Shown in pieces: positions 5,152-62,664 of a stretch of DNA of 64,000 nt. Both the position numbers and the translations under genes were made by a program. This stretch comes from Leucoraja ocellata (lineage: Eukaryota): assembly GCA_036785375.1 (NCBI GenBank), contig JAWMAR010000508.1, forward strand, positions 1,178,001 to 1,242,000, read 5' to 3'. Under the pieces are notes generated by a model. It made no database searches. It was not told the DNA's origin and saw only the letters and a program-made list of their open reading frames with translations. Numbering within the stretch: the first letter of the stretch is position 1; the number at the start of each line of letters is the position of its first letter.

Positions 5152-5448
5152 TTAATCTAAAACCCAAGGCAGGTGTAGCTCTCCCTCCTCAATGCCCCTC
5201 CCTCCCTCCTCACCGCCCCTCCCACAACACGGCGCACCCTGCTCACTGCCCCTCCCTGCTACCCTTCCCCTGCTTGGACTGGAACCAGAGCTCAGCGTAT
5301 TCCACCCCCTCGCCACTGTGGACGGTGTCTCCACTGCTCGACAGCTCCCGCAGGCTGGCGTAGACGGCCGTTTGCTCTTCCACCACTCCCGATTCCCCAC
5401 CTCCTCCCAGCTCCTCTGGGGCTGGCCCGTCCTCTGCACTCCCGCGCT
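5152..5448 (-). CDS. Gene A terminal exon; ITIM-type motifs (AVYASL 5351-5368, VEYAEL 5288-5305) lie out of frame as assembled
   Basis: Acceptor ctttccttccag at 5449. Paralog of 38921-39112 but one G shorter at 5441-5443. Phase-0 reading gives a 98-aa Tyr-free tail ending at 5152. Confidence 0.7.
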   Translation of the reverse strand, partial: SAGVQRTGQPQRSWEEVGNREWWKSKRPSTPACGSCRAVETPSTVARGWNTLSSGSSPSRGRVAGRGSEQGAPCCGRGGEEGGRGIEEGELHLPWVLD

Positions 5449-61300: not shown

Positions 61301-62664
61301 ATACACACCAAAAATAACAATCAAAAGAAATAGTAGGAAAAGACATGTAAAATAAAGAAACATCAAAAACACCAAAAACAGAAGCAAAGCCTCATGCATG
61401 GTCAAAAGCCAGGGAGTACAAATGTGTTTTAACACTGGATTTGACCACGTGTCAAACAAGACAATACGGAGAGAAAAGATGCAGTACGGATGCAGAAGGG
61501 TCTTGACCCGAAACATTCCTACTCTCCAGAGATGCTGCCTGTCCCACTGAGTTACTCCAGCTTTTTTGTGACTATCTTCAGTTTAAACCAGCACCTGCAG
61601 TTCCTTCCTACACATTGTGTCTGCTGCACTGCGAAATCTCCTCAAGATATGTCTACTTTGAAGAAAAGCTCCTCTTTCTGACAAGAGAGAGTCATAGGGT
61701 GATAGTGTGCAAACAGGCCCTTCAGCCTAACTTGCCCACACCGGCCAACATGTCCCAGATACACTAGTCCCACCTGCCCACATTGGCCCATATCCCACCA
61801 AACTTGTCGTATCCATATACCTGTCTAACTGTTTCTTAAACGTTGGGATAACTCCCTGACTTAACTACCTCCTCTGGCAACTCATTCCATACACCAACTT
61901 CCCTTTGTGTGAACAAATCACCCCTCAGGTTCCTATTAAATATTTTCCTTCACCTTGAACGTATGTCTTATAGAAACTTACAAAATTCTTAAGGAGTTGG
62001 ACAGGCTAGATGCAGGAAGATTGTTCCCGATGTTGGGGAAGTCCAGGACAAGGGGTCACAGCTTAAGGATAAGGGGGAAATCCTTTAAAACCGAGATGAG
62101 GAGAACTTTTTTCACACAGAGAGTGGTGAATCTCTGGAACTCTCTGCCACAGAGGGTAGTCGAGGCCACAGTTCATTGGCTATATTTAAGAGGGAGTTAG
62201 ATGTGGCCCTTGTGGCTAAGGGGATCAGAGGGTATGGAGAGAAGGCAGGTACGGGATACTGAGTTGGATGATCAGCCATGATCATATTGAATGGCGGTGC
62301 AGCTCGAAGGGCCGAATGGCCTACTCCTGCACCTAATTCTATGTTTCTATGTTTCTATGACATGACAGTGTGTGTCTACTCACATTCTACAGTGAGGGTC
62401 ACATTCCTCTCTGCTGTCCCGTGTTGATTCTCTGCCACACACTGATAGACCCCAGTGTCCTGCCATGTCAGCTGAGGGAACTCCATCCACAGCTCGTTGT
62501 TGGAACGTGTTGTGTTCAGCGTGTCACCGAGATGTCTCCACGTCAGGTTAGATGCTGGGAAACTCTGGACGGAGCAGAGAATCGTTGCAGAGTTTCCTTC
62601 CTTTACACTGACCCAGGAACTGTTCACGTCATCGGGGAAGTGATTGAGAGATTCTGGGGGGCGT
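38921..62664 (-). CDS. Gene B: paralogous Siglec/MAG-like ITIM-bearing receptor, 5' exons beyond window end
   Basis: Exons 62384-62664, 60912-61193, 59118-59399, 48812-49099, 44120-44216, 40978-41059, 38921-39112. Colinear with gene A, including shared intronic TE insertions. Confidence 0.85.
39477..39543. repeat. (TC)n microsatellite
   Basis: Visible directly. Confidence 0.95.
40978..41059 (-). CDS. Gene B first cytoplasmic exon
   Basis: 82 nt, phase 2-0. Same peptide as gene A. Confidence 0.8.
44120..44216 (-). CDS. Gene B transmembrane exon ([32 protein letters not shown])
   Basis: 97 nt, AG/GT boundaries. Paralog of 10262-10358. Confidence 0.88.
46004..47590 (-). mobile_element. L2-clade LINE, 1.6-kb RT fragment nested in CR1 family 2
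   Basis: ORF 46653-47594 ([27 protein letters not shown]) and 46221-46631. (TTA)n tail at 46004-46057. Absent at the paralogous site near 12130. Confidence 0.92.
48297..48764 (-). mobile_element. Non-autonomous Helitron (468 bp)
   Basis: 5'-TC...GCAGACCC-AAC-GGGTCTGC hairpin...CTAG-3', inserted between A and T with no TSD. Empty site GTTATA|TGGT in gene A. Confidence 0.85.
48812..49099 (-). CDS. Gene B MAG-D5-like Ig exon
   Basis: 288 nt. Near-identical to 13283-13570. Confidence 0.87.
49148..50690 (-). mobile_element. Rex1/Babar LINE fragment with a nested GC-rich retroposon (about 49190-49912)
   Basis: [10 protein letters not shown]...VKFLGLHLS...KRAQQ and ORF 50047-50358. (CTGATA)n tail. 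Confidence 0.8.
50754..51728 (-). mobile_element. Rex1/Babar LINE 3' fragment
   Basis: ORF 51079-51690 ([23 protein letters not shown]...[11 protein letters not shown]). Confidence 0.88.
51806..52848 (+). mobile_element. Rex1/Babar LINE 3' fragment
   Basis: [20 protein letters not shown]...[12 protein letters not shown], (CTTGA)n tail. Confidence 0.9.
53187..59075. mobile_element. Cluster of CR1 family 1 and 2 fragments in the long gene B intron
   Basis: ORFs 54933-55337, 56069-56797, 57138-57902, 57922-58167 and 58667-58996. Confidence 0.85.
59118..59399 (-). CDS. Gene B repeated Ig C2 exon ([13 protein letters not shown]...)
   Basis: 282 nt, phase 1-1, intact. Confidence 0.88.
59599..59817. 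mobile_element. 219-bp palindromic Penelope-terminal-repeat insertion with hammerhead-like core
   Basis: 93-bp inverted arms centred on 59691. 15-bp TSD CATTGAAAGTAGGCA at 59584-59598 and 59818-59832. Confidence 0.85.
60912..61193 (-). CDS. Gene B repeated Ig C2 exon (mosaic b/a type)
   Basis: 282 nt, [13 protein letters not shown]..., phase 1-1. Confidence 0.85.
61201..61444 (-). mobile_element. L2 3'-end fragment abutting a splice acceptor
   Basis: Reverse complement of about 29850-30090, with (TTA)n tail. Confidence 0.85.
62384..62664 (-). CDS. Gene B repeated Ig C2 exon (type a); 281 nt, 1-bp frameshift as assembled
   Basis: G4 at 62634-62637 where other type-a copies have G5. Splice sites intact. 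Confidence 0.75.

Follow-up and report, generated by a model that had tools for sequence, protein, structure and literature searches.

A probable pair of paralogous MAG-related Siglec genes with stalks of different length in the skate Leucoraja ocellata

A 64,000-nucleotide (nt) stretch of the Leucoraja ocellata genome (GenBank assembly GCA_036785375.1, contig JAWMAR010000508.1, positions 1,178,001–1,242,000 of the forward strand; this whole stretch is called the window below, and positions are counted from its first letter) holds two colinear minus-strand genes, A and B, built like receptors of the sialic acid-binding immunoglobulin-like lectin (Siglec) type. They are likely to be two paralogous Siglec genes related to the myelin-associated glycoprotein (MAG, Siglec-4), to belong to a shark-and-ray family, and to stem from a segmental duplication of ~30 kb. 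A preliminary description, made from the sequence alone, had proposed such a pair, with eight immunoglobulin (Ig) domains in A and three repeats plus a MAG-like membrane-proximal domain, probably six Ig domains in all, in B, and had taken the essential arginine, an interdomain cysteine pair and a C-x8-CxC pattern in the membrane-proximal domain as Siglec/MAG features. All Ig exons that it listed are present with an AG acceptor, a GT donor and phase 1-1 borders, and the three features could be aligned with the structures of MAG and CD33.

Gene A contains eight Ig exons with matching phases, together with exons for a signal peptide, a transmembrane (TM) helix and a cytoplasmic tail, all on the minus strand. 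The coding part of the signal-peptide exon (32029–32068) runs from an ATG at 32068 over 13 codons plus one base to a gtacca donor; it was found by tblastn with residues 1–27 of the relative P0018 and resembles the N-termini of both P0012 and P0018. A V-set exon of 366 nt (26746–27111) carries the essential arginine in the motif FFRVD, an N-terminal tryptophan and three cysteines, and a C2-set exon of 294 nt, D2 (24720–25013), has the extra Siglec cysteine. The stalk is made of five repeat exons of 282 nt each: R1 (22398–22679, I-set), R2 (20839–21120) and R3 (19664–19945) are supported by Pfam matches and AG/GT borders, R3 also by a solved-structure match, while the 279-nt in-frame parts of R4 (18108–18389) and R5 (16933–17214) are identical to those of R2 and R3, respectively. 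The membrane-proximal exon of 288 nt (13283–13570), similar to the fifth Ig domain of MAG and called Ig5-like here, shows the pattern C-x8-C-x-C with a fourth cysteine. It is followed by a TM exon of 97 nt (10262–10358; 69% identity to P0010), a short cytoplasmic exon of 82 nt (7916–7997), which resembles the juxtamembrane parts of P0010 and P0013, and a tail exon (5152–5448) with its phase-0 stop at 5152–5154. The phases fit throughout: phase 1 closes the signal exon, each Ig exon has 1-1 borders, the TM exon goes from 1 to 2 and the cytoplasmic exon from 2 to 0, and the tail is read in phase 0. The signal, TM, cytoplasmic and tail exons, missing from the initial set, were located by tblastn of the best 150 V-exon relatives against the window; the searches and the fold model used unjoined exons.

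Gene B is represented in the window, likewise on the minus strand, by three repeat exons (R1, 62384–62664; R2, 60912–61193; R3, 59118–59399; all three supported by Pfam matches and AG/GT borders), an Ig5-like exon (48812–49099), a TM exon (44120–44216), a short cytoplasmic exon (40978–41059) and a tail exon (38921–39112). Read in phase 0, this tail holds the tyrosine motifs AVYASL (39014–39031) and VEYAEL (38951–38968) in frame and stops after 63 codons, at 38921–38923. The flank of gene B at 62359–64000 matches gene A at 22373–24032, the D2–R1 intron, with 96.2% identity; B's D2 and V exons should therefore lie beyond the window, adding two Ig domains to the four found in it. In both genes a glutamate sits halfway along the TM helix (codon 10297–10299 in A, within 44120–44216 in B), at a position where the relatives P0010, P0017 and P0083 have alanine or leucine, which hints at a partner protein. 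The TM exon of both genes also opens with GTAAGAG right after the acceptor, a donor-like string at its first base (10340–10375 in A).

The domain identity of each exon type was established from its own matches. The V exon matched the Pfam families V-set (E-value 9.9e-10) and Ig_CD22, the model of the first CD22 Ig domain (3.8e-06), and its best solved structures were MAG (2e-18), sialoadhesin (1.1e-14) and CD33 (6.5e-13). In the alignment, FFRVD of the window lies over YFRGD of MAG, which carries the essential arginine, and also on the arginine of sialoadhesin. This arginine is kept in 28 of the 31 family V domains, in all eight true-MAG rows and in all three rows of shark five-Ig proteins, and of the 31 family rows, 30, 31 and 31 conserve the three cysteines of V. 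To judge from these alignments, gene A has the V-set domain with a strand-F arginine that defines Siglecs; the V exon of B lies outside the window. The D2 exon matched C2-set_2 (5.4e-10) and, among solved structures, CD33 (3.2e-07) and MAG (7.6e-06). The cysteines of V and D2 align with those of MAG and CD33, giving the three-cysteine V pattern of Siglecs (an intrasheet pair plus one for the bond between V and D2) and their extra D2 cysteine, with the bonds themselves putative here. I-set/Ig_3 matches were obtained for all six repeat exons sent to Pfam (R4 and R5 of gene A, with in-frame parts equal to R2 and R3, were left out of that set), and the best solved structures for a repeat were contactin-2 (3.1e-20) and the third Ig domain of MAG (1.3e-18).

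Pfam returned no family for either of the two Ig5-like exons sent. The solved-structure search matched the exon to MAG residues 395–480 (5e-07, with C-x8-C-x-C aligned), the next match standing at 0.0024. Searched among proteins, the exon retrieved family members at 4.5e-23 to 3.6e-39, then a shark five-Ig protein at 6e-11 and the fifth Ig domain of gecko MAG at ~1e-9. Its cysteines C10, C19, C21 and C77 were invariant in 17 of 17 rows drawn from the family, the shark five-Ig protein, and gecko and frog MAG. The AlphaFold model of the exon is a confident Ig fold (predicted local distance difference test, pLDDT, 90; predicted template modelling score, pTM, 0.80), and in the Foldseek search with this model MAG took ranks 3–4 with the top identity among the top 10 rows.

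The V exon was searched with HMMER against 1.84 billion representatives, yielding 903 matches at E ≤ 0.001, 213 at ≤ 1e-10 and 20 clusters at ≤ 1e-30. The closest protein found comes from the thorny skate (Amblyraja). RefSeq names the relatives automatically as "myelin-associated glycoprotein-like" or "sialic acid-binding Ig-like lectin N"; they occur in rays and skates (Amblyraja, Mobula, Pristis, Hypanus and Hemitrygon) and in sharks (two Scyliorhinus species, Hemiscyllium, Stegostoma, Chiloscyllium, Mustelus and Heptranchias). The same eight-Ig plan as in gene A is seen in P0017 (Mobula birostris XP_072122227.1, 835 aa), a computer prediction, in the order signal peptide, V, C2, repeats (five by sequence reading, four long high-scoring segment pairs), Ig5-like domain, TM helix, short cytoplasmic stretch and two-tyrosine tail; unlike the window genes, it has leucine in place of the TM glutamate. 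Its identity to the window is 56% in V, 68% in D2, 74% in a repeat and 64% in Ig5, and that of gecko MAG is 28–40% per domain (V 37%, Ig5 34%). Other family members have no repeats, or V and Ig5 only, or V only, and a Stegostoma protein of 1,463 aa gave eight long repeat matches. The tail type varies as well: P0012 (Pristis pectinata XP_051901316.1), a member with V, D2 and Ig5, has at its C-terminus a pair of YxxL motifs at a distance of seven residues, which by sequence would be a tail like an immunoreceptor tyrosine-based activation motif (ITAM), built into the receptor.

Two trees were built. The V tree, made by a quick method, comprised 146 rows, 11 of the 156 proteins having been dropped because their V match was shorter than 95 residues. 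In it, the window pairs with Amblyraja P0007 (support by the SH-like approximate likelihood ratio test, SH-aLRT, 96), inside a 15-row clade (98) in which all labelled rows are rays or skates and a 30-row clade (91) in which all labelled rows are sharks or rays. A true-MAG clade of eight rows (SH-aLRT 99), made of gecko, frog, tinamou and three unnamed fragments, stands apart, the backbone being unresolved. The window is also apart from a 31-row clade (99) with turtle and elephant-shrew rows and LHYAS/TEYSEI-type tails, of which two rows are named. The Ig5 tree, made by a careful method from 27 rows (P0133, which gave no match under 1e-4, and P0207 were left out), placed A and B together (100/100) in a 13-row family clade (95/99), apart from a seven-row true-MAG clade (97/100). 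The Mobula protein P0017 belongs to the same clades as the window genes in both trees. No skate MAG orthologue was among the rows of either tree. The best matches of each domain and the nesting in both trees, as far as sequence can tell, make the window genes members of a shark-and-ray family of MAG-like Siglecs.

That one of these genes is simply the skate orthologue of MAG seems hardly credible. MAG is the best solved match of the V exon, with arginine, tryptophan and cysteines aligned; the repeats match its third and fourth Ig domains, the Ig5-like exon with its four invariant cysteines has MAG as its only clear solved match, and many relatives bear the RefSeq name "MAG-like". However, MAG has five Ig domains, against eight in gene A and an inferred six in B, and the window genes are multi-copy members of a large, clustered family, have a glutamate in the TM helix and fall outside the true-MAG clade in both trees. 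In addition, sharks have separate MAG-size five-Ig proteins (P0207, 638 aa; P0110, 629 aa) that align colinearly with gecko MAG from end to end at 28% identity, and these are the stronger candidates for MAG orthology. In Heptranchias perlo, P0110, a MAG-size five-Ig protein, and P0111, a family-type protein of 833 aa, bear consecutive accessions (XP_067831460-63) on one 15.7-Mb contig, which hints that the family adjoins a MAG-like gene in a shark.

Several of the broader claims of the preliminary description can be weighed at this point. A MAG-architecture family distinct from a simple MAG orthologue is borne out by the V-set and Ig5 trees that it had proposed, both of which put the window in a shark-and-ray clade outside true MAG; the 20 clusters found at E ≤ 1e-30 show the family to be large, and stalk length varies across it. 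Its "lineage-specific" family holds for sharks and rays, which form a clade separate from MAG, but not as a peculiarity of one species, since RefSeq has predictions for 12 or more species of sharks and rays. The statement that MAG has a different tail did not stand for non-mammalian MAG: gecko and frog MAG, turtle Siglecs and the shark-and-ray family share the layout "xxYA[NS][IL] ... x[ED]YAE[IL]" near the C-terminus. A phmmer search with the tail of B gave nine matches, all of them family members (best 3.6e-06), and did not reach the true MAG tails; the likeness of the tails is thus one of pattern only, without statistical support. Overall, the preliminary description was upheld in part: the MAG-like plan, the family apart from MAG and the stalk variation stand, whereas species peculiarity, the "different" MAG tail and in-frame tyrosine motifs in gene A do not.

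Turning to the relationship of the two copies, A and B form a colinear chain from 4034/36880 to 24032/64000, in which 13,851 nt are aligned at 96.1% identity. The chain is broken by nine B-only insertions of 471–2588 nt (11.3 kb in total) and by A-only stretches of 491–1258 nt. Within gene A, 15869–23339 is occupied by a 2.73-kb tandem unit of two exons, present in two full copies and a partial third; units 1 and 2 are 98.7% identical (27 mismatches and one gap), and unit 2 and the partial third are 97.8% identical. This unit accounts for the five repeats in A versus three in B. The identity of R2 with R4 and of R3 with R5 was considered as a sign of selective constraint and rejected: the differences between units cluster in 15895–16811, with one in 16812–18600, so that the sameness of the duplicated exons belongs to the tract as a whole and is silent on selection.

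Several observations weigh against reading the window as an intact, neighbouring pair of MAG-related genes, and they are brought together here and in the three paragraphs that follow. Foldseek does not single out MAG for the Ig5-like model, as Ig domains of titin and obscurin score equally well, and the MAG link of this exon therefore rests on sequence, not on fold. Between A's 5' flank and B's 3' flank lies an N gap (36680–36879), and the homology of B to A begins exactly at its edge, 36880; the tandem order therefore rests on scaffolding. Further N gaps lie in the last intron of A (5576–5740 and 5877–6083) and of B (39235–39363), and the link of each tail exon to its gene likewise rests on scaffolding, although the homologous blocks flanking these intron gaps keep their order in both copies. 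None of these four gaps interrupts an exon or comes within 120 nt of one, and they are crossed by no reading frame. The gaps at 5576–5740 and 39235–39363 occupy the same relative place, ~125 nt upstream of the tail exon, which suggests that an element difficult to assemble is common to both copies. A gap between the copies at the very point where homology starts, and matching gaps in their last introns, speak for A and B being the haplotypes of a single locus or copies put in tandem by faulty scaffolding. In a DNA-like sequencing run (X1), some contigs were identical to A and others ~4% different, and contigs of the A and B types had similar low depth, compatible with haplotypes or paralogues. 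On the other hand, the copies diverge by 3.9% over 13.85 kb, differ by the private insertions on both sides and in repeat number, and belong to a family that is clustered elsewhere, with several members on one contig in Pristis, Hypanus, Stegostoma and Heptranchias. We judge the haplotype or misassembly explanation rather improbable; given their structural differences, A and B look like paralogues rather than alleles.

Two reading frames are disturbed. In gene A, the G run at 5441–5443 is one base shorter than in B, and the phase-0 tail is a motif-free stretch of 98 residues ending at 5152. The motif frame of A, read from 5446, is itself intact, with AVYASL at 5351–5368, VEYAEL at 5288–5305 and a stop at 5243–5245, and a second AG two bases on (exon start 5446) might restore the motifs to frame, as a possibility only. 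In gene B, the C run of R1 (62634–62637) counts four C instead of the five in the other seven repeat exons, which breaks the frame if the usual acceptor is used; another AG, with the exon starting at 62653, would keep it. Both homopolymer changes could be real or assembly errors. An initial assignment of gene B as the copy with the shifted tail was reversed by the sequences of relatives and the phase of the cytoplasmic exon, and a second donor of A's cytoplasmic exon was discarded as a rescue of the frame, the next GT lying 3 nt on and keeping phase 0. A TM exon followed by both motifs in frame is seen in B, and would be in A only via the AG two bases on; the immune-type tyrosine motifs announced for the pair are in frame in B and shifted out of the phase-0 frame in A by the shorter G run.

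The exons of A and B also differ unevenly. Substitutions number 4 of 285 nt in the Ig5-like exon (two synonymous, two non-synonymous), 1 of 81 nt in the cytoplasmic exon (one synonymous, none non-synonymous) and 5 of 93 nt in the TM exon (one synonymous, four non-synonymous). The repeat pairs R1A/R1B, R1A/R2B and R2A/R3B differ at 8 of 228, 10 of 279 and 11 of 279 nt, with 6 synonymous and 23 non-synonymous codon changes over the three pairs; the repeat exons thus differ about as much as introns and mostly non-synonymously, which fits relaxed constraint too. The label "fast-evolving" is drawn from these small counts.

RNA data over 5140–10400, the 3' end of gene A, came from one raw RNA run (~5% read) and two contig sets guessed to derive from RNA. 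In all three, the bins of the tail exon (5140–5491) and of the TM exon (10244–10400) had zero depth, which is the last of the points against the pair; no exon joint was seen among the 15 joints shown for this region (1,162 others were not shown), and whatever depth there was elsewhere came from retroelements, in the same amount on either strand. Part of the V–D2 region is present in 20 runs, with a best share of 0.52. Runs X15–X20 (word shares 0.19–0.24) were considered as containing exons only and set aside, X15 and X16 having given only short retroelement contigs. No indel row appeared at A's G run, where the depth of X1 was just 2.97. The reads weigh neither for nor against expression, the frameshifts or a given copy number.

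Together, the frames of A's tail and B's R1 broken at homology-supported splice sites, the 23 to 6 excess of non-synonymous changes and the lack of RNA reads on the 3' exons are what one would see if one or both copies were young pseudogenes, with real homopolymer changes unrescued by splicing in a locus decaying after duplication. Against this, all exons are otherwise open with intact splice sites, the Ig5-like (1.4%) and cytoplasmic (1.2%) exons differ less than introns (3.9%), an in-frame AG lies near each break (exon starts 5446 and 62653), and assemblies are known to be prone to homopolymer errors where paralogues are 96% identical. Decay of one or both copies is an appreciable possibility, though we think it the less likely one.

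CD33-related Siglecs combine a V-set domain with the arginine, C2 domains and proximal and distal tyrosine motifs; they lie in tandem clusters, gain and lose domains and motifs, and include paired inhibitory and activating members. On paper, the window genes would work in a similar manner, and CD33 is the best solved match of D2 (3.2e-07). In contrast to that group, the window V domain is nearer to MAG (2e-18) than to CD33, Siglec-5, -7 and -8 (6.5e-13 to 5.9e-08), and the window genes have an Ig5-like membrane-proximal domain and a long I-set stalk. With sialoadhesin (Siglec-1) and CD22 (Siglec-2) they share a long multi-Ig stalk that sets the reach of the V domain, sialoadhesin being the second-best solved match of V (1.1e-14), and membrane-proximal domains of "CD22-like" proteins from paddlefish and turtle match the Ig5-like exon weakly (4.7e-07 to 1.3e-06). 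Unlike in those two receptors, the stalk here consists of near-identical young repeat exons, and in the V tree the window does not group with their rows.

In Siglecs generally, the V domain binds sialylated glycans, the length of the stalk sets the reach to ligands on the same or another cell, and phosphotyrosines of the tail recruit SHP-type phosphatases. By analogy, each window gene would encode a type-I membrane receptor whose V-set domain should bind sialic acid via the conserved arginine; binding is predicted, all of its sequence hallmarks being kept. Below it would follow a C2 domain, an I-set stalk (five domains in A, three in B), a domain related to the fifth Ig domain of MAG and a TM helix with a glutamate. 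Once phosphorylated, the two-tyrosine tail would recruit SH2-domain phosphatases of the SHP type and damp the activation of the cell, presumably an immune cell. Unequal crossing-over between two-exon units would change the length of the stalk and thereby the reach to ligands on the same or another cell. A bolder proposal, which we regard as speculative and improbable, is that A and B are a young paired-receptor module of a MAG-derived family filling the role of CD33-related Siglecs in sharks and rays: sialic acid-binding heads of the same type with different reach (eight versus six Ig domains) and opposite signalling, B inhibitory through its two tyrosine motifs, A made motif-less by a one-base deletion, and both docking a partner with a basic TM residue through the TM glutamate.

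The two Siglec genes and retroelement fragments are the only coding sequence identified in the window. The DNA is that of a vertebrate and is crowded with such fragments; many open reading frames (ORFs) recur at least 10 times, and most of the sequence is present in several copies inside the window itself. Six ORFs were sent to Pfam, three of which matched: the reverse-transcriptase domain RVT_1 was found in two and ALKBH8_N in two, one ORF having both; no family was returned for the commonest intronic ORF (310 aa) or for two others among the six. The ALKBH8_N matches fall in retroelement ORFs of B's private insertion, at 51079–51690 (minus strand, 6.6e-20) and 51832–52587 (plus strand, 4.1e-10), and in the latter the match adjoins a reverse-transcriptase match; the Pfam model was probably built on retroelement sequence. 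Among the tandem arrays, long CA-rich arrays of a 15-nt unit with five N gaps inside lie downstream of gene A (1558–3642), a C-rich 35–92-nt array lies in intron 1 of gene A just upstream of the V exon (27335–27916), and a GC-rich minisatellite with a 23-nt unit (30.5 copies, 86% matches) lies ~0.7 kb upstream of the ATG of gene A (32805–33502).

In the open full-text literature, supplementary files lying outside its coverage, we found no paper describing a Siglec expansion in sharks, rays or skates. A teleost study reports four conserved Siglecs in fish and describes fish as being without the fast-evolving inhibitory CD33-related group (PMC7226832); "shark" and "cartilaginous" do not occur in that article. 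A whale-shark genome paper names Siglecs once and refers the reader to Supplementary file 9, whose content may affect how new the present description is. The kind is known and RefSeq already contains predictions of the family; what is gained is a description and a testable model rather than a new kind of system.

The window thus documents, exon by exon, a pair from a large shark-and-ray family that seems to derive from a MAG-like ancestor, and it offers a concrete case of a change in stalk length, through a two-exon tandem unit, and of a single-base tail switch. The variation of both stalk length and tail type within the family suggests that immune-type Siglecs expanded independently at the root of the jawed vertebrates.

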